Positions 1,440-59,783 of a stretch of DNA of 64,000 nucleotides are shown here, piece by piece. Made by a program: the position numbers and the translations under genes. The notes under the pieces are model-generated. The model searched no databases. It was not told where the DNA came from and saw nothing but the letters and a program-made list of their open reading frames with translations. This DNA comes from Macrostomum lignano (taxonomy: Eukaryota), in the NCBI GenBank assembly GCA_002269645.1, contig NIVC01000364.1:124001-188000 (forward strand). The letters are read 5' to 3'. Position 1 is the stretch's first letter. The number at the start of each line of letters is the position of its first letter.

Positions 1440-8570
<7,131 letters not shown>

Positions 8571-9624: not shown

Positions 9625-10150
9625 TCTCTGCCACCCTCTGACACCCTCTGCCACCCTCTGACACCCTCTGCCACCCTCTGCCTCCCTCTGCCTCCCTCTG
9701 CCTCCCTCTGCCTCCCTCTGCCCCTCTGCCAGTCCTCTGCCCCTCTGCCAGTCCTCTGCCACCCTCTGCCACCCTCTGCCACCCTCTGACACCCTCTGCC
9801 ACCCTCTGCCTCCCTCTGCCTCCCTCTGCCTCCCTCTGCCCCTCTGCCAGTCCTCTGCCCCTCTGCCAGTCCTCTGCCCCTCTGCCAGTCCTCTGCCACC
9901 CTCTGCCACCCTCTGCCAGTCCTCTGCCACCCTCTGCCACCCTCTGCCACCCTCTGCCACCCTCTGCCACCCTCTGCCACCCTCTCTGCCACCCTCTGCC
10001 ACCCTCTCTGCCACCCTCTGCCACCCTCTCTGCCACCCTCTGCCACCCTCTCTGCCACCCTCTGCCACCCTCTCTGCCACCCTCTGCCACCCTCTCTGCC
10101 ACCCTCTGCCACCCTCTGACACCCTCTGTCACCCTCTGCCACCCTCTCTG
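9625..10150. repeat. 10-bp minisatellite (CCACCCTCTG)n with variants
   Basis: Directly visible. Confidence 0.96.
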
Positions 10151-11015: not shown

Positions 11016-11707
11016 TTATCCAAGATCGCAGCCCCGTTGAACTGAAACGGCTGGCACCAACTGTCAAGTGAAGTCAGCAAAGATCACCAAACTCGTATTT
11101 AGTTTAAATATTAGTCAGTAAAACGCAGTTCAAACTGTTTATTTGTTTTATTAACATAAGCCATTAACATTTTTTCCAAACAGGAATAATCTTGCAAAAT
11201 TCAGTGCATTGCGCAGTTGTTCACACCTTGACTTAATTACTCGGATCAATTAGATATCATTAGTAATAAAAATAGTTAGAGCGCTCAACAATTTACAATT
11301 AAGGCCTCTCTGGAAATCAGTCAGTCAGATTTTATATTGCTGCAGCCGCAGCGGGTAGCATAAAAAATAAAGAGGCTTTGAAAAATAAAATCACTCACAC
11401 AAAAAAAGCAGAGAAGGCACAACAAAAGAGCTTGGGTAAAACTGCCGAGAAAAAAACCAATTGAGCCAAAAAACACGAAGCGTTGTTCTCGCCTTTTTAT
11501 TCGTCTACGATTTTTTTTTCATTTCAGCGATAGAAAATTTGACTGAAGAGAGAAAGAGTACAAAAATATTCGAGTTTTTAGTGCACTGTTTTCATAGAGA
11601 GAGAGAGAGAGAAGTTTTGAGACAACTTTACTGTTAGGAGACAATGCCTTAGAAAAGTAGACACAGAAAGCCAAGAGTCTCTGGGTTGTCCGTCTCGAAC
11701 TCCCGGC

Positions 11708-14700
11708 TCAGGCAGCTTGCTCTGAAATTCAGCATTAAGTTTGCATTTGCGAATTCACCTCGGTAAACTTTGTCGTTTCCGCTCCCCATCTATTCCGCCC
11801 CTAAGATCCGCCCCCGATACTTCCTCAGAACCAACTTCCGTCCTTGCAATCCTCTCTCAGATCCGCTCCCCAGATCTGGCGGATGATGAAGGCTCATGAT
11901 GAAGATGAGGAAGGTAAAGTTAGATCCGCCCTTCAGACCTGCCGCTCCAATCCTCACTCAAATCCGCCCTTCAGCCCACCCTTCAGATCCGCCCCTCAGA
12001 TCAGCCCCTCAGATCCGCCCTTCAGATCCGCCCTTCAGATCTACCCCTCAGATCCGCCCCTCAGATCCGCCCTCAGATCCGCCCTCAAATCCGCCCTCAG
12101 ATCCGCCCTCAGATCCGCCCTCAAATCCGCCCTCAGATCCGCCCTCAGATCCGCCCTCAGATCCGCCCCTCAGATCCGCCCCTCACGTCCGCCCCTCAGA
12201 TCCGCCCCTCAGATCCGCCCTCAGATCCGCCTCTCAGATCCGCCCCTCACGTCCGCCCCTTAGATCCGCCCTTCAGATTTGCCCCTCCAATCTCCAATCC
12301 TCTATCAGTTCAGCCATTCAGATCCGCCCTCAAATTCGCCCCTCCAATCCTCTATCAGATCCGCCATTCAGATCCGCCCTCAAATTCGCCCCTCCAATTC
12401 TCTATCAGATCCGCTTTTCAGATCCGCCCTCCAATCCTCTATCAGATCCGCCCTTCCTTCAGATCCGCCCTTCAGATCCGCCCCTCCAATCCTCTCTAAG
12501 ATCCGCCCTTCCTTCAGATCCGCTCTTCAGATCCGCCCCTCCAATTCTCTCTCAGATCCGCCCTTCAGATCCGCCCTTCAGATCCGCCCTTCAGATCCGC
12601 CCTTCAGATCCGCCCTTCAGATCCGCCCCTCAGATCCGCCCTTCAGATCCGCCCCTCAGATCCGCCCTCAGATCCGCCCCTCAGATCCGCTCTTTGAACT
12701 CACGTTCCTCCCCGGCGGTCTCGCCCTGAGCGGCGGCCTCTCCCTCGGCTGCCGGCGCCGGCGAAGCGGCATCTGGCGGGGCGTCACCGGCCGCCGGCGT
12801 CGCCGAAGTCTCGGCTTGGTCTCCGGCCTCCGGCGCTACCGCCGCCTCGTCCGCCGGCTTTTCTTCGCCCGCACCTTCGGCATTCTCGGCTGGCTGCGGC
12901 GTGGAACTTCCGGCTGCGGCGGCGCCTGCCAGTTGAAAAAAGTGAACGGTCGTAATTAAGTAGATTTCAAACTGGCCGGCTTCATCGCTTATTAAAATGT
13001 TTACCAATCTCCCCGTTTGCCTCGGGGGCAGCGCCGTTCTCCTGCTTCTTGTCGGCGTTGTCGGCCGCGTTGGCCTGCTGCTGCTGCTGCTGCTGGCCCG
13101 CTGCCGGCTTGGAGGAGTTCGCGGCCGCGTTGCCGCTGGCCGCCGTCTGTCCGCCTGCCGGCTTGTTGCCGTTCGCAACTGGATGGTGGGAAAGGGTGGG
13201 TGGGTTTTTATGGCTGCAGAAGTAAAGTTAGTCTGCTTGTAATGGCGATGAGTCTCTCCTACCTCACATCCCAACACGCATCCGCCCATCATCCGCCCCA
13301 TCGTCCGCCCTATCATCCGCTCTCTAACATCCGCCCCATCATCCGCTGTCTATCATCCGCTCATCAAACGCCCCATCATCCGCTCTCTATCATCCGCCCC
13401 ATCATCCGCTGTCTATCATCCGCTCATCATCCGCCCCATCATCCGCTGTCTATCATCCGCCCATCATCCGCCCCATCATCCGCTCTCTATCATCCGCCCC
13501 ATCATCCGCTCTCTATCATCCGCCCCATCATCCGCTGTCTATCATCCGCTCATCATCCGCCCCATCATCTGCTCTCTAACATCCGCCCCATCATCTGCCT
13601 CATCATCCTCCCCATCATCCGCCCCATCATCTGCCTCATCATCCGCTGTCTATCATCCGCTCATCATCCTCCCCATCATCTGCTCTCTATCATCCACCCC
13701 ATCATCCGCCTCATCATCCTCCCCATCATCCGCCCCATAATCTGCCTCATCATCCGCTGTCTATCATCCGCTCATCATCCTCCCCATCATCTGCTCTCTA
13801 ACATCCGCCCCATCATCCGCCTCATCATCCTCCCCATCATCCGCCCCATCATCTGCCTCATCATCCTCCCCATCATCTGCTCTCTAACATCCGCCCCATC
13901 ATCCGCTCTCTATCATCCGCCCCATCATCCGCCCCATCATCCGCTCTCCATTGTCCGCCTCATCATCTGTCTAATCAACCAACCAGTTATCAACCGCCCA
14001 TCACCTGCCCTTAAATATTCCTCGTTTGTCTTCAGTTCTCTATCATCCCTTATCCTCCGCCCCCCATAATCCGCCTCTCGTCAGGACTGTCTTTTTACTA
14101 TCAGTTTAAAGGACCACGTGCGTCATTCAGCATCGCGGAAAATTTATACTGCGCAACGGAATTTTTTTTAATCGATGCCCTGTCGGATCTCCACCGCCTC
14201 CGCGTTGCTAGCCAAAATAGTCAGTTGAAACGGTGGGGGAGGGGTTATCGCATGTCCATTGTCCACCCCGCGGCCCTCACGATTCCCAATTATCCATATC
14301 TGGTATGAGGAAGAGGGGAGGCGGGTTAGAGGGGATGGAACTTCCAGCCTCTTTAAAGCTGCGGCCCCCTGTCGCGTTGTTAGCCAAATGATTTCGCCGC
14401 GACCCTCTGTCTCTGTGTGTGTCCGGGTGTCCGGTAGCGAATGGGTTGGTGTGGGTGGCTGGCGGGCTTGCCCACTAAAACAAACGAGCGTCAGTAAATA
14501 CGTTGCCATGGTAACGCTGAGGACTGGGGGAGAGAGGAAGAGGGAAATAGGAGAGTCGCCAGACGGGACAAGCCCTGTTTTCCATGCCCCAGTTCAACCC
14601 CCCCCCCACCCGGCTGCTGAAGTGTGCGGCAGTATTGTAGACGCCGACAAAAACAATTTTCCACCCCAAATCCCCAGAGCGCTTCTACTAGAGGCAGGAG

Positions 14701-15390
14701 AGGGGAAGAGAGAGAGGCGGGTAGGGAAGGTAAAAAGTGGCTCGCTGCGGTGTGAGTGGGGAATTGGGGAGTAAATAGATTCCCTATAGACCTGCCAGCT
14801 GCATTCTCTATTCCCTGTTCCCTGTTCCTACCCTGGTTGCCAGGGCCATGGACAGCTAACTCTGTGGAGTTCTCAAGCGAGAGAAAGAGGAGAATGAGAT
14901 GAGATTTCAATGCGAGGTGGGCTTCCCCCCCCCTCGTTTCTCTATTTTTATTTTTGCAGCTGTTCGCTCCAACTTTGCACACGCTTAGCATTGGTTACCA
15001 TGGCAACAGGTTTTTTACGAATACTATAGTCATTTCGCGTTTGCAGAGATTTGAAGGCCCCGTTTGACGATAACCGATGAAGAGAAAGGAGATTGGACAT
15101 TTGAATGCTACAATTCAATAATTTTGGTGTGCTGGGAAGATTTGAAGCATTTGTCTACTCAGAATCTTCGGATTGTGGGGTAGTAGCTAACGAACAACCA
15201 GCATAGCTAGAAAACCAGCTGAAAGAGATGATGGCACTGAGGGCCTCACTTCCATTCCTGACTATGTTACGAGCATATACGTGACAATGATTTCGTTGAT
15301 TACAATTGATTACATTCACAAGCTCTTTTATTAAAATACATGTACTTCGTCCTTACCCTGCTGCTGGCCTTTGCTGCTGTTGCAACCCAT
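11708..15390 (-). CDS. Novel 147-aa Ala/Glu/Gln-rich disordered protein with N-terminal MGCNSSK dual-acylation motif. Exons 15390-15357, 13178-13005, 12925-12704, 11721-11708
   Basis: Four exons with canonical GT-AG sites (GTAAGG, GTAAAC, GTGAGT donors), all phase 1, summing to 444 nt: [22 protein letters not shown]...[23 protein letters not shown]...GETAGEEQQAA*. A minus-strand AATAAA lies near 11140. No family recognised with certainty. Confidence 0.78.
11920..12690. repeat. 12-13-bp minisatellite (TCAGATCCGCCC)n in intron 3 of the novel gene
   Basis: Starts immediately after the GTGAGT donor at 12703. Confidence 0.95.
13280..13960. repeat. Degenerate 12-bp minisatellite (CATCATCCGCCC)n in intron 1 of the novel gene
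   Basis: Directly visible. Confidence 0.93.
14502..14515. promoter_or_regulatory. RFX X-box GTTGCCATGGTAAC
   Basis: Perfect match to the GTTNCCATGGNAAC consensus. Confidence 0.75.
14994..15007. promoter_or_regulatory. RFX X-box GTTACCATGGCAAC
   Basis: Perfect consensus; exact reverse complement of the site at 14502. Confidence 0.75.
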
Positions 15391-15729
15391 GCCGATATGT
15401 CAATCAGTTGGTTTTCCTGTCCTGTCGACTGTGTGTACACACGAAAGCGAAACCCGGTCAAGACTTTGTTATTTAACCGGCTTAAGGGAAGTCGAACTGC
15501 TTCTAGTCAAGAAAAAATCGATTTCTATAAGCTGGGGTAGAAGAACTATAATTTCAAAGCAAGCAAGATTAGAAGAGACTGGCGGCAGCTGCTGCAGAAG
15601 CAGAAGTGAGGACAAAGGAGGGACTGGCAAAGACAATGGGGCCGAGGCGAGGCGGGAGGTCTCTCTTGAGGGGGGGGGCTGGCGACAGCATTTTTATTTG
15701 CACCCCAGGTTTTGCTTCAGGATATGCTT

Positions 15730-15743
15730 GTTGGCATGGCAAC
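15730..15743. promoter_or_regulatory. RFX X-box GTTGGCATGGCAAC (one mismatch)
   Basis: About 340 bp upstream of the ATG at 15390 (minus strand). Confidence 0.6.
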
Positions 15744-16239: not shown

Positions 16240-16990
16240 CTTTAGTTGTCACTGTCACTGTCACTGCAACCCCTCACTGTCACTGCAACTCCGTCACTGT
16301 CACTGCAACCCCGTCAATGTCACTGCAACTCCTCTGTGTCACTGAAACCCCGTCAATGTCACTGCAACCCGTCACTGTAACTGCAACCCCGTCACTGTCA
16401 CTGCAACCCCGTCACTGTCACTGCAACTCCTCTGTGTCACTGAAACCCCGTCAATGTCACTGCAACCCCGTCACTGTCACTGCAACCCCGTCAATGTCAC
16501 TGCAACTCCTTTGTGTCACTGCAACCCCGTCACTGTCACTGCAACCCCGTCACTGTCACTGCAACCCCGTCACTGTCACTGCAACCCCGTCAATGTCACT
16601 GCAACTCCTTTGTGTCACTGCAACCCCGTCACTGTCACTGCAACCCCGTCACTGTCACTGCAACCCCTCACTGTCTCTACAACCCCTCACTGTCACTGAA
16701 ACAGTCACTGTCACTGCAACCCCTCACTGTCACTGAAACAGTCACTGTCACTGAAACAGGCACTGTCACTGTAACCCCTCACTGTCACTGTAATCCAGTC
16801 ACTGTCACTGAAACAGTCACTGCAACCCCTCACTGTCACTGCAACCCCGTCACTGTCACTGAAACAGTCACTGTCACTGTAACCCCTCACTGTCACTGTA
16901 ACCCCTCACTGTCACTGTAATCCAGTCACTGTCACTGAAACAGTCACTGTAGCCCCGTCACTGTCACTGCAACCCAGTCACTGTCACGAT
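16240..16990. repeat. GTCACT-based degenerate minisatellite (GTCACTGCAACCCCGTCACT)n
   Basis: Directly visible. Confidence 0.94.
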
Positions 16991-17305: not shown

Positions 17306-30857
<13,552 letters not shown>

Positions 30858-45013: not shown

Positions 45014-48000
45014 ATGGACTGGCTTGTTCGCGAAGTGAGCGCCAGTTTCACTGGCAACCGCTATCCCGTTCACATTGGCTGGCTCATTGTTCAAGTGCTA
45101 TGCGCCTCCTTATTCTGGCTATTCATGTACGCCGCCCTGTGCCTCTCCATGCCCAGATTCCGCTGCGAGTGGCACTGCCGCATGGTCACTGCAGTCCACG
45201 CTCTGATTGTGTCCGCTCTGGCCTTTCTGGACGTCTTCATTATTGGCAGAATCCCGTTCTATCATAAGAATCAAGGTGAGAGATGTCAGGATCTAGGCCA
45301 GGGCCTGTTAGACATACTCGTTCGAATATCTGTTTCACTTGTTACTCCTTATTATGCAATCTTACTAAGGTGTTTAGTGAAAAGTTTCAGCCTCAATAAT
45401 CATAATAACAATATTTCAAGTTTCGCTTTTTGTCTATGTCCTATCTCTCTACAGGCATTCGTATATTTTAGAGCACCGCTCTCTTGTTTTTTTCCTAAAA
45501 GCATGTTTGAGCCTTAAGGCAATATAGAAAACAATAAAGTGCTTCAGCATTAACGCTGCTCTAAGTCTTTGGAGAAGAGTCCACGTTCTGACGACAGTGC
45601 ATGAGCCACTTCAATGGCGTCGCGACTGAACGAGTTGCAACTCGAGAAACCCGAGCGGGCTCTGACCTGGCTGAAGGCTTTCCAGGCGTTGGCCCGTGCA
45701 AAAGGCTGGAAGGATGAAGGCAACGATTTTGCAATTGCGAACAATTTCCTGGCTACATGTGGCCTCAGTGCCTTTGAGAAATTAGAAAGCCTGGTGGCTC
45801 CAAAAAAAATCGAGACTTTGAAGTTTGCGGATCTAGAAAAAGCACTTCTCTCATATCTCCGACCGAAGGAGAAACTGACTGTTGCGGAACGCACGCGGTT
45901 TTTTCATGTGCGTCAGCGGCCTGATGAAACGGTTTGCGATTTTCTCTCGCGCCTTCGCACTGCGGCCACGGACTGCAAGTTTGACGAATTGCGGTCTTGT
46001 GCAAGTCCTGCTGAGGAGCTGATTCGACTGGCTTTGATTTCGGGAATGCGAGATCATCGGACTCAACAGCGTATTTTAGAAACAATGCAAACTGACGACA
46101 TGTCAATTGAAGACATTGTGGATTTTGTCCGCAACCAGGAGCAAGTGGCTGCTTTTATTGTCTCTACCGGTGCGGATGCCAATAGCGTTCAATCTAACAG
46201 TGCTACTGCCTCTACGAGCATTTCCTCTGCAGCTACGGATGCTGGCACATTGCATTATTCCCAGGCCAGCCACACAAAGAAATCAGATGGCTATAAACGT
46301 GTTGTTACGGACTGCAGGTTCTGTGGGAAATCACACCCGCAAGGCAAGTGCCCGGCATTTGGTAAGACATGCACGAAATGTTCCAAAAGAAATCACTTTA
46401 GTGCAGTTTGTCGCTCGCAACCATCAAAATCCGTGCACAACGTTTCCGAGACTGAGACCTCTGCAGACGAGGGTGCCACCCTCCCATCAACGGATGTCTT
46501 GCATCTCTCCGATTCACATTCGGTTAATTCCGTAGATATCGTTACCGAAAATCTCCTTATCAACGGCCGTCATATCGCCATGCAGATTGATACGGGAGCC
46601 TCTGTGTCCGTTCTTTCCAGTACCCTCTGGGAATCGCTTGGCCGACCCACGCTTCAGAAGTGCACTCGCCGACTAGAAGCCTACGACGGTCATGCTCTTA
46701 AAGCGCTCGGCAAACTGTGCACCACCGTTGAGATGAATGGTCGCCTCCATCCCGCTGAACTCATGGTAATATCCTCCTCTAAGAAATACGGACTTCTCGG
46801 CCGAGATCTGCTTGAGTCAGAGAGACTATTCCATGTGTCTGTGCCTACATCTGCGACTGCGCCGCAGATAGTTGCGCCTCTTCCGACGATCAAAGGAGTT
46901 AAGGCCACGATGGAACTTGTTGCTGGAGCGAAGCCTCGTTTTTGCCGTGCCCGAGCTGTGCCAATTGCTCGTGAGTCTCAAGTGAATGCGGAACTGGACC
47001 GGCTGCAACAGCTCGGCGTAATTGAGCCTATCGATGGTCCAGTAGAGAATGCGTCTCCAGTTGTTTGGGTCACAAAAAAAGACGGCACTTTAAGGATGTG
47101 TGCGGACTACAAGGTTCATGTTAATTCCAAAATAAAATCAGATTCTTATCCTATCCCAAACATCGAGGGGATGTTCGCTAAACTAAAGAACGCCAAAAGG
47201 TTTGCCAGCATTGACCTACGATCAGCGTATTGGCAGATTGAGTTAGATGAGGCGGCTCGTGATCTGTCCGTGATAAATACCTCACGTGGTCTGTACAGGG
47301 TGAATCGATTGCAAATGGGTATGAAGAACGCCTCTTTCATTTTTCAGCGCACAATGGAGGCTATTCTATCCGACTTGAAAGGGCTGCTGATTTACCAAGA
47401 TGACATTCTTGTATTCGCCGATAACCATGACTCCTTGCAGAAGCGTCTGATGGCAGTCAAGAAACGCTTGGAGGAGAAGCGTGTTACCATCAACGAAGCT
47501 AAGTGCATTGACTACTGTGACGAGATTTCTTTCCTAGGCTTCAAGATCTCCGCCGCTGGCATTCAACCTGATGATCGCCTCGTTGAAAAGGTTCGCCAAA
47601 TCGCTACGCCCGTAAACAAGCAAGAGGTATCGCAGTTTCTGGGTCTCGTCAACTTTTTTGGCCGACTAATCCCAAATTTCACCGCTAAAACACGCGCGTT
47701 AAACAATCTTCGCAAGGCTAGCACAGCGTTTGTCTGGGATTCCAGTTGCTCTGAGGAATTTGAAAATCTGAAGCGTGAGATTAGCTCCGCTCCTGTCATA
47801 AGGCCGTACAGTTTAGAGAAACCAGTCACTTTGACTACCGATGCCTCCAAAGGTGCCGTGGCTGGCGTACTCACGCAGGAAGGACATCCCATCATCTATG
47901 TTTCGAGAACGTTATCAAAAGCTGAGGAAAACTACTCAAACATTGAGCGCGAGGCGCTTGCAGTTTTCTGGGCAATCAATCGCCTAAGACAATACCTCCT

Positions 48001-51000
48001 AGGAAGAAATTTTACTATCCAGACAGATCATCAGCCGCTACTTCGCCTCTTTGGTGGCGAGGTGCCCACGCACACCTCGGCTAGAATTGGTCGCTGGGCG
48101 CTTGCGCTTATGCAGTATGACTTCCAAATTCAATATGTTAGTGGTCCTCAAATTCCCCATGCCGACGCACTATCCCGCCTGCGTTTCACTAAAGCGTCGC
48201 CCGATCCAAAGGAAATTTCTGATGCGATCAACTGCGTGGTATTCGAAACCTCAACCATTGACTCTAAGCGTATACTGGCGGAGATGGATTCTGACCCTCT
48301 TGTTCAGAAGATAATTCAGCGCGTGCGCTCTGGAGACTGGTCGAAGTGCTCTCAGGCGGAATCCCCATTCAAAAAAGTCGCGGATCGCCTCACTATGGAA
48401 ACTGGCCTGCTATTCAAGCAGAGACGCATCTTTATTCCGCCTCGCCTACGTCTCGAAGCCTTTAACACTATTCACGACACGCACTTGGGCGCGCAAGCCT
48501 CTTACAATCTACTAGCCTCATCGTGTTGGTGGCCTGGGATGCGGCTTGATGTTGAACAATTTGTGCGTCGATGTGCTGGATGCAATCAGCTACGACCGCG
48601 ACTGCACAAAGAAAGAGACACTTGGCCAGCATCTACTTTTCCTTTCCAGCGGATCCACATCGATTGGGCGTATGTAAAGGACATTGGAAATATCCTAATT
48701 GTCGTCGATACGTTTTCAGGATGGATAGAAGCTTTTCCGTCGCGTGACAGATCAGGAGATAGCGTTGTTCGGTCCCTAATTACCGTATTTTCTCGATTTG
48801 GTGTACCCGAACTACTTGTGTCGGACAACGCACCTGAGTTTACTGGTGATCCCCTATCCTCATTCCTACGCGCCAACGGCGTTCGGAAATTGGAGTCACC
48901 TCCGTACTACCCTCAGGCAAATGGATCGGCGGAGCGGGCAGTTCGTACTGTCAAGACGGCGTTGAGAGCGTGGACCGAGCGCGTCACCCACATGGAGTTT
49001 CTCCGCTTCCTTCAGAAGATACTTTTCCACCATCGCAATTCGTCCATGTCCCGAGGTAAATGCCCGGCGGAATTGGTCTTTGGCAGACGACTGCGCGTGC
49101 CCGTAGTTTCACCTTTCGTTCAGGGGGAGACGGTCCACTACAAACCACATGAATCGTCGTCAGGCACCCCCGCGACCTTTGTGATGACTGCAGGCAGGAA
49201 CACGGCGTGGGTTCTCGCTGACAGTCGGTTGCAGTTAGCTAGCACTAATCAGCTGGCGCCTCAAAACCAGCCTTCAGACGCCGATGACGATGATGAAGAT
49301 GCTGTTCCCACATCCAATGCAGACGTGCCGCCCGATGACCAACAGCAGGCCCAACTGAGACGAAGTTTGCGAGACCGTCGACCTCCCGAGAGATTCACCC
49401 CATAGCATTCTCATGAGTTGCAGTGAACAACAACTACCTTGCCTGTTAACAATGAACTGAATAAGATATGTTTTCCCACTCTAAAAGTTACTCATGAAAT
49501 TTTATGCTTTATTGATATAACCCATACATATAGGTCATGGTTGTAAGCAGCTTCTGAAGAAGGGGCATGTTGTGCATTGAGAGAATGCCTCCTATCAACG
49601 CGCGCATTGATGTACTACTATTAATTCTCTTACTGACTCTCTCGTTCCCTTCAAGTTTCGCTTTTTGTCTATGTCCTATCTCTCTACAGGCATTCGTATA
49701 TTTTAGAGCACCGCTCTCTTGTTTGTTTCCTAAAAGCATGTTTGAGCCTTAAGGCAATATAGAAAACAATAAAGTGCTTCAGCATTAACGCTGCTCTAAG
49801 TCTTTGGAGAAGAGTCCACGTTCTGACGACAGTGCATGAGCCACTTCAATGTCAGGATCTAGGCCAGGGCCTGTTAGACATACTCGTTCGAATATCTGTT
49901 TCACTTGTTACTCCTTATTATGCAATCTTACTAAGGTGTTTAGTGAAAAGTTTCAGCCTCAATAATCATAATAACAATAATTGATTACAGATGCTCAGCC
50001 GCAGCTATTGCGCGGCGCATCTGAAGGCTGCGTACGGCAGTTCAGTCCAAGGACTGGGGGGGGGGGTCGCCACACAGCCTCAATTACCCCAGTTAATGCC
50101 GGCATCCCATTTTACAGCTGGGTGAACTGAAGCAGTGCAGAGTTAAGTGTCTTGCTTAAGGACACAAATTGTTCCGAGTGGGGCAAGAATCGAACCTAGA
50201 CCTTTCGGACGTAAGTCTGACGCTTCAACCACTAGGCTGCAACCCCTCAAAAAGCTTTTAAATACATTTTAGGATTCTCTAAGTTTAGATAGTGAGCAGG
50301 TATTTAGTTATGAATCTATTTAAAATCATTAATTTGCTGAATCATTCAACCATTAATCTTGTAGTCCTGCCTTACACGGAACTGGAAAGGCTAATATTCA
50401 CGGCCAGCCTCGGCTATTTTATATTCGACATCTCCTGGTGCCTGTACTATCAAACTGAGGGCCCCTTCATGCTGTTCCATCACGCTATGAGCATTCTGGG
50501 CCTGGCCGGCACCCTGCTGATGGGCAAATGCGGCGCTGAGATGGCCGCCACTGTTGGTGGGACGGAGGTCACCAATCCAGTGCTGCAGTTGCGATGGTTC
50601 CTGCGGGAACAGGTGGGTTTTGCTTGCTCAGCTTTTATTGCTGCTTGGCATTTTTGTGTGTCTGTATGGGGATTTGTTTTGGGATTCCATTGTGTCTGTA
50701 TGGAGTTTTGTTTGGGGATTCCATTGTGTCTGTATGGAGTTTTGTTTGATTATTCCATTGTGTCTGTATGGGGTTTTGTTTGGGGATTCCATTGTGTCTG
50801 TATGGGGTTTTGTTTGGGGATTCCATTGTGTCTGTATGGAGTTTTGTTTGATTATTCCATTGTGTCTGAATGGGGTTTTGTTTGGGGATTCCATTGTGTC
50901 TGAATGGGGTTTTTTTTGGGGATTCCATTGTGTCTGAATGGGGTTTTGTTTGGGGATTCCATTGTGTCTGAATGGGGTTTTGTTTGGGGATTCCATTGTG

Positions 51001-57829: not shown

Positions 57830-59783
57830 ATGGCTACAGCCGCGAAATCGGCCATTTCCGCCAAGGCGAATCTCTACTGCAAGAACAACTGCGGTTTCTA
57901 TGGCAACTCCAGTTGGCACGGTTACTGCTCCGTGTGCTACAGGGACGCCTATCTCAAGCCGAAATCCCGCACAGACGATGCCCGCGAACATCAGCAGCAG
58001 CAGCGTCAGTCATCCTCTGCCGCAGCCACCGCTGTGGCCTCCTCGGCCGCGGCCGCCGCCGCCGCCGGTCTGTCCGCCTCGTTCAACCAGTTCGAAGAGA
58101 AACGGCGCCAAGTGACCGGCCGCGGCGCCAGCACCATAAAAAACCTGCTGAAAAAGCCGACAGATTCGGCGGCCTCCGCGCGCAGTCGATCGCCGCCAGC
58201 CGCCGCAGTCTCCGACGATGACTCGGCATCGACAACCGGCCTATCGACTATCTCAGAGGTCGACAAGCACTCGAACTACGAGTACATGACGTTTGTGAAG
58301 TCCCTGCCCAGAGCGGCCGGGGTCGACCTGACCAAGCAGATCAAATCGGCCATCGCCAGGCTGAAAGTTCTGCCGGCTGCGACCGCCTCAGTCGAAGAGT
58401 TCAGCGACGCGGCGCAGGAGTTCTACGCCAGCCTGGCCAAGCGGATCGGCGCGGAGCCGGCCTATCACCGCCTCACAGAGCAGCAGCGGACTGACGCTCT
58501 GTTCTGGGCTGAAACTTTCCTGACTAAACGAATCTACAGGACCGTGTTCAGCCAGGGCCCGGACGAGGAGGCTAAAGACATCGCTTTGCAGAAGAAGCTG
58601 CGCTCTTTGCACTGGGTGACCCCGGCTATCCTGGAGTCGCGAGTGTCTAATAATAGTCCGCACTTTTACGAGGCCGTAGCCTGCCTGCTGGCGCTGGACA
58701 CTCTGGTGACTCCGCCAGCCAAGCTGGACAGCATCGTCCGCTGCGCCAATCACATCTTCAAAGCTTTGAACGAAGCCTCTGGCGATGCCGCGTCAGCCGA
58801 CGACTTCTTGCCAGCCCTGATCTACGTACTGCTGAAAGGCAATCCACCTAGGCTGCAATCCAATATCGCTTTCATCACTAGGTTCGCCAATTCCGCCAGG
58901 CTTAACACCGGGGAACAGGTGAGGCTTATTATGGTCTTTGTGGAGTCCTGTTCCCCATCATCAACTGTGTGCACTGTGGAGTCCTGTTCCCCATCATCAA
59001 CTGTGTGCACTGTGGAGTCCTGTTCCCCATCATCAACTGTGTGCACTGTGGAGTCCTGTTCCCCATAATCAACTGTGTGCACTGTGGAGTCCTGTTCCCC
59101 ATCATCAACTGTGTGCACTGTAGAGTCCTGTTCTCCAGCGTCAAACTCTAGGTTAGTCTACACCTAAGGGTTAAACGGATTTTTTCCCTGAGGACTAAAC
59201 CATGGACTATATACCGGTAGATCCTACGTATCGTTGTTCAGCAATATCGTAGTGCACGCAGACGTCAAAGCCAGAAAAAAACAGTGTTTAAGAACCCTCC
59301 GGCACGCGGCGAAGGGGGGGGCGGAGGAGAGGTGGGCGAAGGGTGGCGTTAACACACTTAACACTGAGGCCCACGGAGCAGGCCTAGTGTAAAGTAGACA
59401 TCAATTGAATTCCAAATTCTCAGGGCTATTACTTCACCAATCTGTGCTGCGCCGTGTCGTTTTTGGAGTCGTTGAATCACGAGTCGCTCAGCCTGCCCAA
59501 GGAGCTGTTCGACAAGTTCATGACCGGCCAATTGTCGCCGGCTACGCACGGCCTCAGCGTAGCCGAGCGGGTGGCGCAGTGCCTCGCCCTGCTAGACGCC
59601 GGATCTAGCAGGCTGAACGAGCTGGACGCCAGGGCTAAACAGCTGCGGACGGACATGGACTCCGTTGAGGCCGACATGGCCAAATGCGTTGCCGAGGTCC
59701 GCGAGCAGGTTGCTAAGCACAGGGCGGAGCGGCCGCTGCGGCTGCCAATTAAGGAGGGCCGGGTGCACCAGCCGGCTGAGTGA
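57830..59783 (+). CDS. RABGEF1: Rab5 GDP/GTP exchange factor Rabex-5, about 482 aa. Exons 57830-58918 and 59424-59783
   Basis: A20 zinc finger CKNNCGFYGNSSWHGYCSVC; VPS9 domain SADDFLPALIY...TGEQ|GYYFTNLCCAVSFLE; C-terminal coiled coil. Confidence 0.93.
58939..59135. repeat. 36-bp minisatellite, about 5.5 copies, in the RABGEF1 intron
   Basis: Unit GTGGAGTCCTGTTCCCCATCATCAACTGTGTGCACT. Confidence 0.95.

Follow-up and report, generated by a model that had tools for sequence, protein, structure and literature searches.

A candidate uncatalogued gene of Macrostomum lignano with a predicted dual-acylated, acidic product and a cluster of RFX X-boxes around its first exon

Does a cluster of X-boxes, the sites recognised by RFX transcription factors, mark an unannotated gene in the flatworm Macrostomum lignano, and if so, what kind of protein does this gene encode? 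The question is raised by a minus-strand locus within a stretch of 64,000 nucleotides (GenBank assembly GCA_002269645.1, contig NIVC01000364.1, positions 124,001 to 188,000 of the forward strand), which was analysed as a whole and is called the window below, all positions being counted from its first nucleotide. An initial annotation had proposed here a small gene coding for a MARCKS/BASP1-like protein, lipidated at the N-terminus and possibly ciliary. Our results confirm the observation behind this proposal and partly support its interpretation. The reading we prefer, at a probability a little short of even, is that of a lineage-restricted, uncatalogued M. lignano gene, whose product would be a dual-acylated, acidic, disordered, membrane-anchored protein and whose expression would be under dimeric RFX-type control.

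The coordinates and the in-frame splicing of the four proposed exons were reproduced: the coding sequence spans positions 15390 to 11708 and, after removal of three GT..AG introns, yields a product of 147 amino acids (MGCNSSK...GETAGEEQQAA) ending at TGA 11710-11708, the splice junctions being agg/GTAAGG..ccag/, ttg/GTAAAC..gcag/, and aac/GTGAGT..tcag/ (Table 1). Exon 1 is indispensable, because the protein contains no other Met. The 5 kb that precede exon 2 contain 53 phase-1 ATG..GT segments, of which exon 1 alone has a donor score of at least 4, and 90 ATGs, of which only that of exon 1 opens a PS00008 N-myristoylation start. Its donor (score 5.1) falls at the 99.4th percentile among all GT dinucleotides in the window, and its initiation context, ggcATGG, has a purine at -3 and G at +4. 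The exon 3 donor, GTGAGT, is at the 98.7th percentile, and the donors of the gene span the 91st to 99th percentiles. In intron 2, the GC content drops to 0.38, compared with 0.70 and 0.76 in the exons on either side, and the boundaries of this drop coincide exactly with GT..AG on the minus strand, but not on the plus strand; retention of the intron leads to in-frame stops, while its removal joins the frame of exon 2 with the highest GC content at third codon positions (GC3) among the three sense frames to the sole open sense frame of exon 3. GC3 equals 0.82 in exon 1 and 0.89 in exon 2 (0.62-0.88 in local coding sequence), and codon-usage log-likelihoods favour the chosen frame in both exons. 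A polyadenylation signal, AATAAA, is located at 11501-11496, about 205 nucleotides past the stop codon. From these features of the DNA we infer that the locus is transcribed and spliced. A start trans-spliced to the exon 2 acceptor, which presupposes a spliced leader ending in ATG, is not favoured: the frame it would open is Arg-rich, has a lower GC3, and stops early in exon 3.

The whole protein has no match at E<=0.01 among 5.8 billion protein clusters, M. lignano UniRef entries included. In a local control, an identical protein would score E=1.7e-71 and a single-exon open reading frame (ORF) below 1e-20, so that the absence from this database is real. When exon 3 was compared with 1.84 billion representatives, one marginal match was obtained (P0021, E=1.5e-4), compositional in nature and split into multiple stretches. 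Pfam yields no family for the protein even at E<=10, and Rfam no known RNA family in the window. A literature search retrieved nothing specific on Macrostomum and RFX, on the MGCNSSK string, or on an invertebrate MARCKS MH2 domain. The description of the gene as unannotated thus holds: it is uncatalogued in the searched protein databases and has no detectable homologue.

The points that weigh against the preferred reading concern the gene itself, its regulation, and the location of its product. As for the gene, exons 2 and 3 are GC-rich and of low complexity, with most frames open on both strands (all six in exon 2 and several in exon 3), and the codon-usage scores do not discriminate the chosen frame in exon 3. 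Exon 4 supplies four codons only, and hence a three-exon read-through form is possible, in which unspliced intron 3 would end the ORF with a stop at 12681. The lack of a homologue means that there is no evidence of purifying selection. The many open frames and the lack of a homologue, together with antisense frames that score equal or better in synonymous-codon tests and with the lack of annotation of an extremely low-complexity protein, speak for a locus with no coding gene at all, but a GC-rich unique island between two minisatellites, with splice sites arising by chance and the X-boxes forming a free-standing regulatory element. Such an island would, however, need several independent coincidences: a unique, high-scoring, phase-correct exon 1 combining a Kozak context with a myristoylation consensus; an AT-rich spacer of 79 nucleotides bounded by GT..AG, whose removal restores the only open frame; donors of uniformly high rank, as given above; and a poly(A) signal at a normal distance from the stop. 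We therefore consider the island unlikely and regard exons 1-3, judged by their sequence, as probably a real coding gene, for which the four-exon structure is the best available model of the locus.

The predicted protein is small and acidic (13.9 kDa, isoelectric point 4.05, 30% Ala, 21 acidic and six basic residues), in agreement with the Ala/Glu/Gln-rich disordered body described initially. It contains no aromatic residues and no Arg, His, or Leu, and should therefore be intrinsically disordered. A run of (CAG)7 encodes polyglutamine at residues 40-46 (about 13044-13064 of the window) and could be length-polymorphic.

The sole recognisable functional element, as far as the sequence tells, is the N-terminus with Gly2, Cys3, Ser6, and Lys7. 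The proposed acylation signal is borne out at the level of the motif: MGCNSSK fits PROSITE PS00008, G-{EDRKHPFYW}-x(2)-[STAGCN]-{P}, and adds Cys3, so that Met-Gly-Cys fits a predicted signal for dual acylation, myristoylation plus palmitoylation. Indeed, Cys3 decides palmitoylation of myristoylated Src-family kinases (PMC2200018; for Fyn, PMC2132482). By the same route, Met would be removed, N-myristoyltransferase would acylate Gly2, and a palmitoyltransferase would then acylate Cys3. The resulting two-signal anchor of the SH4 type may tether the acidic tail to the plasma or ciliary membrane on its cytoplasmic side, where the tail could serve as a spacer or scaffold, rather than as a protein sequestering phosphatidylinositol 4,5-bisphosphate (PIP2) or calmodulin.

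That the protein belongs to the MARCKS/BASP1 family as a divergent invertebrate representative, a kinship to which the label "MARCKS/BASP1-like" of the initial annotation points, is effectively refuted. The resemblance consists of the MGxxxSK start, the alanine-rich acidic composition, and the string QENG(x5)NGE beside an intron, a loose echo of the MH2 motif QENGHVKxNGD. The start does agree with the MGxxxSK consensus of MARCKS (PF02063), which is, however, common to hundreds of unrelated proteins. A 14-sequence MARCKS/MARCKSL1 alignment shows no variation at M1, G2, S6, and K7, nor in the MH2 core or the effector domain. Compared with this alignment by hhalign, the candidate reaches a probability of 2.9% over eight columns, and the region of the QENG string is left unaligned; profile searches of the protein (Pfam and hhalign) thus identified no family. 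The string itself is real, yet it differs in spacing from the MH2 domain (K-x-N-G-Q-E-N-G-H-x-K-x-N-G-D) and cannot be distinguished from an effect of composition: a hidden Markov model of the MARCKS N-terminus plus MH2 gives the candidate 28.6 bits and shuffles that keep its first seven residues 27.8 +/- 4.6 bits, with 405 of 1000 shuffles scoring at least as high as the candidate. Nor was the basic effector or phosphorylation-site domain, KKKKKRFSFKKSFKLSGFSFKK, found in the candidate, which has no Phe or any other aromatic residue and no six-residue window with three or more Lys or Arg, and translation of the 64-kb window in all six frames reveals no effector-domain-like peptide. All named MARCKS matches in the database are vertebrate proteins. 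The polybasic effector domain that BASP1/CAP-23 carries at its myristoylated N-terminus, MGGKLSKKKKGY..., is likewise absent, as only Lys7 and Lys17 occur in the first 30 residues (net charge +2); this comparison relies on the described N-terminus and on Pfam, the BASP1 sequences themselves not having been fetched. Features of GAP-43/neuromodulin, which is palmitoylated at Cys3/Cys4 but carries no myristate and binds calmodulin through an IQ motif, are missing too: there is no IQ-type motif, and the N-terminus is MGC, not MLCC. Taking all this into account, the likeness to MARCKS and BASP1 is one of composition and of a generic myristoylation start.

The X-boxes were searched for with the consensus GTNRCC N0-3 RGYAAC. 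As proposed, two sites are perfect and exact reverse complements of each other, and a third lies about 340 bp upstream of the ATG; the third has one mismatch. All three fall within 1.25 kb (-353 to +888 relative to the ATG), whereas 0.05-0.2 sites are expected per 64 kb, the lower value being that at <=1 mismatch. Three X-boxes were reached in none of 100 dinucleotide-preserving shuffles, and by a Poisson estimate, the chance that any 1.25-kb stretch contains three is about 1e-8. The sites are independent rather than copies of a repeat, because similarity among them stops at the motif; an origin as part of a transposon or repeat is ruled out, as the flanks share nothing. A further X-box-like sequence, GTTTCTATGGCAAC, occurs at 57894-57907, in the coding first exon of a Rabex-5-like gene, where it encodes GFYGN of an A20 zinc finger, and probably matches by chance.

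The RFX half-site (GTTRCY) and the palindromic X-box have been conserved between choanoflagellates and animals, and RFX sites are enriched in the promoters of ciliary genes and clustered near transcription starts (bioRxiv 10.1101/2022.11.11.515474). The dimeric RFX1-3 prefer palindromes of two half-sites, while RFX5 and RFX7 use one half-site (PMC8287911). Genes of the rfx3 and foxJ1 types are expressed in flatworms (PMC6225667), and the epidermis of M. lignano is multiciliated (PMC7053086). Since the cluster brackets exon 1 (-340, +383, +875), assignment to the nearest promoter favours the small gene. We infer binding of dimeric RFX1-3/DAF-19-class factors to the X-boxes around exon 1, and, because the palindromic sites are of the type bound by these factors, the gene would be switched on with the ciliogenic programme, the candidate cell types being those of the multiciliated epidermis, the protonephridia, or the ciliated sensory neurons. 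As for regulation, two circumstances count on the opposite side: X-boxes 1 and 2 lie within an intron, 0.4-0.9 kb past the ATG and farther from the start than is typical, and there is no excess of forkhead/FoxJ1 motifs around the X-boxes.

The cluster has another candidate target, namely FBXL13/DRC6, the same-strand upstream neighbour of the small gene, an F-box gene recognisable by its leucine-rich repeat (LRR) domains. Its last large exon, 18166-19071 (minus strand), matches a M. lignano UniRef protein (P0001) and, at about 40% identity, vertebrate and mollusc FBXL13/DRC6; tblastn of P0001 on the window produces 92-100% identical blocks in several exons, the large LRR-exon block being at 91% only because of an internal gap, so that the proteins, too, identify the window as M. 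lignano DNA. The apparent stop codon of this gene, TGA at 18166-18168, overlaps a GTGAGT donor (G at 18169), and a further exon, 17422-17344, adds ASVIRMTRRIPSVTHSTQDPLGPGP and a stop codon (17346-17344), resembling the C-termini of homologues (…GISKSAAQKMMKTVEIVHYSTDDTP…); AATAAA/ATTAAA signals follow at 17104-17078. The P0001 model, which has several frame errors, uses this exon in another frame. As the extra exon and the poly(A) signals reach about 17080, FBXL13/DRC6 ends only some 1.35 kb upstream of X-box 3.

This proximity bears on a serious, if improbable, alternative also raised initially, according to which the cluster is a downstream or shared RFX enhancer of FBXL13/DRC6, the small gene being only co-regulated or a bystander. 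In its favour, DRC6 is a genuine gene of the axoneme; the 2.5 kb (24016-26500) that precede the most 5' recognised FBXL13 exon contain no X-box with <=3 mismatches; and the true last exon and poly(A) region (17422-17080) lie nearer to the cluster than the stop at 18166 had implied. On the other hand, RFX sites concentrate near transcription starts (bioRxiv 10.1101/2022.11.11.515474), and a distance of at least 8.3 kb separates the cluster, which brackets exon 1 of the small gene, from the most 5' FBXL13 exon found; moreover, FBXL13 could have an X-box of its own in an unrecognised upstream exon or promoter, its 5' end being unmapped.

If the small gene is the target, it remains to be asked where its product would reside. 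As for location, Met-Gly-Cys proteins are mostly general plasma-membrane proteins, and one of them, RP2, is located at the plasma membrane or the ciliary base. N-myristoylation is necessary, but not sufficient, for ciliary targeting, which in cystin needs the AxEGG motif, and in NPHP3, a coiled coil together with UNC119/ARL3 (PMC6678300). AxEGG (A.EGG) does not occur in the candidate protein, which comes closest to it with AAEGE. VxPx, a string similar to a ciliary targeting motif, occurs once (VAPE, residues 99-102), compared with about 0.16 chance occurrences expected.

The gene may accordingly be real and RFX-controlled, while its product is a general or neuronal cortical membrane protein, reflecting a non-ciliogenic role of the RFX1-3 class. 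RFX members drive non-ciliary programmes via the same motif (PMC8287911), and Met-Gly-Cys anchors mostly lead to the plasma membrane or rafts (PMC2200018, PMC2132482), which agrees with the missing AxEGG-like targeting motif and the missing Fox enrichment. We nevertheless think it unlikely: two full palindromes are the site type preferred by the dimeric RFX1-3 class, the ciliogenic factors included, the animal is covered with multiciliated cells, and a motile-cilia gene is immediately adjacent. Within the preferred reading of an RFX-controlled, membrane-anchored protein, location in the ciliary membrane is plausible, although its probability is low, and location in the cilium itself is speculative. 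Distinctly unlikely, in our estimate, is the most specific version, in which a flatworm-specific orphan would form a component of the ciliary membrane in multiciliated epidermal cells, i.e., an RFX-driven, dual-acylated, acidic disordered "brush" on the inner leaflet; we hold it just as doubtful that such a brush would be, by analogy, a functional counterpart of cystin or HASPB/SMP-1 evolved independently.

Table 1. Exons, introns, RFX-type sites, and the intron-1 repeat of the candidate gene (window coordinates).
Feature	Positions	Strand	Remarks
X-box 3, GTTGGCATGGCAAC	15730-15743		one half-site perfect, the other with one mismatch; 340 bp upstream of the ATG, presumed promoter
Exon 1, coding part	15357-15390	-	ATG GGT TGC AAC AGC AGC AAA ...; phase-1 donor agg/GTAAGG
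Intron 1, 2178 nt	13179-15356	-	contains X-boxes 1 and 2, the extra half-site, and the G-rich minisatellite
X-box 2, GTTACCATGGCAAC	14994-15007		exact reverse complement of X-box 1; perfect; intron 1, +383
Extra RFX half-site GTTGCC in GTTGCCAGGGCCAT	14836-14849		intron 1
X-box 1, GTTGCCATGGTAAC	14502-14515		perfect palindrome of two half-sites; intron 1, +875 from the ATG
Intron-1 minisatellite (GGGGCGGATGAT)n	13279-13967	-	sense strand G-rich; related to the intron-3 array
Exon 2	13005-13178	-	C-rich polypyrimidine acceptor (82% Y), then AG; GC 0.70; (CAG)7 run
Intron 2, 79 nt	12926-13004	-	AT-rich, GC 0.38; GTAAAC...TTTTTTCAACTGGCAG
Exon 3	12704-12925	-	acidic Ala/Glu/Pro-rich body ending GETAGEE; GC 0.76
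Intron 3, 982 nt	11722-12703	-	nearly all minisatellite (GGGGCGGATCTGA)n
Exon 4	11480-11721	-	acceptor gaatttcag/AG; last four codons QQAA, TGA, 3' untranslated region of about 210 nt

The window is crowded with minisatellites. The array of intron 3, (GGGGCGGATCTGA)n, at 11922-12690 is kin to that of intron 1; both arrays have a G-rich sense strand with the potential to form G-quadruplexes, and the adjacent arrays at 9626-10147 and 16254-16987 are likewise G-rich on the minus strand. Besides the genes discussed above, the window contains genes for an HNF4-like nuclear receptor, an EF-hand protein, a Rabex-5-like VPS9 protein, and a VWD-domain protein, as well as a Ty3/gypsy element. In the HNF4-like receptor, the ligand-binding-domain exons (3134-4450, plus strand) are connected by one open frame running through a minisatellite that translates as (LYPNPAS)n; although stop-free in all three frames, this minisatellite is probably intronic. 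The Ty3/gypsy-type gag-pol ORF (45614-49405, plus strand) is uninterrupted over 1263 amino acids, which suggests a young insertion of a long terminal repeat retrotransposon. Divergent to FBXL13, at 26596-28868 on the plus strand, there is a gene with Cys-rich CxxCxGxG repeats, DnaJ-zinc-finger-like and perhaps of the SSUH2 type, for which Pfam has no match at E<=0.001.

For the evolution of MARCKS or BASP1 the locus is irrelevant, and no long-standing question is opened by it. What it does illustrate is how annotation misses short low-complexity genes in the repeat-rich genome of M. lignano. If the gene is transcribed, an orphan, lipid-anchored disordered protein would join the candidate RFX regulon of a flatworm amenable to genetic work, in which the prediction is easy to test, since both transgenesis and RNA interference are available. 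If the preferred reading is true, a conserved ciliogenic transcription factor would be seen acquiring young, lineage-specific targets, and the compact promoter/intron module with its three X-boxes might be useful as a driver for ciliated cells.

Comparison with known systems allows us to place both the regulation and the product of the candidate gene. In common with the RFX/DAF-19 X-box regulon, the consensus is matched exactly twice, by palindromic sites, near the 5' end of the gene; in that regulon, however, a single box is located about 100-250 bp from the start, whereas the candidate has three to four sites across 1.25 kb, two of them in intron 1, and no orthologue among known ciliary genes. 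The MARCKS/MARCKSL1, BASP1/CAP-23, and GAP-43 proteins ("GMC") are alike in being small, of the acid-soluble type, Ala/Glu/Pro-rich, disordered, and N-terminally lipidated. In MARCKS-type proteins, the effector domain is a substrate of protein kinase C and the binding site for PIP2, calmodulin, and actin; the candidate, having no basic effector domain, cannot act as an electrostatic-switch sequestrator of PIP2 or calmodulin, and its second membrane signal is predicted to be palmitate on Cys3, in contrast to the polybasic patch of the MARCKS type. With the SH4 proteins (Yes, Fyn, Lck, G-alpha-i/o, and RP2), it shares an N-terminus marked by Gly2, Cys3, Ser6, and Lys7; that of Yes, for example, is MGCIKSK. 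By this analogy, myristate and palmitate together would provide stable attachment to the inner leaflet. The SH4 proteins have folded catalytic or signalling domains, in place of which the candidate has about 140 residues of acidic disordered sequence.

Should the ciliary version be right, the best functional analogy would be cystin (CYS1), which is of nearly the same length (145 amino acids, compared with 147) and is also myristoylated at Gly2, with a mostly disordered Ala/Glu/Pro-rich chain; it differs from the candidate in requiring AxEGG (PMC6678300) and in having no Cys3, and no sequence similarity between the two was detected. In kinetoplastids, calflagin/FCaBP, HASPB, and SMP-1 reach the flagellar membrane by means of an N-terminal myristoyl plus palmitoyl anchor, and HASPB, too, is acylated, hydrophilic, repetitive, and disordered (PMC6678300, PMC3491706); these proteins belong to an unrelated lineage and show no homology to the candidate, and the calflagins carry EF-hands. 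The small gene of M. lignano thus adds to kinds already known, the SH4-anchored disordered proteins and the X-box genes.

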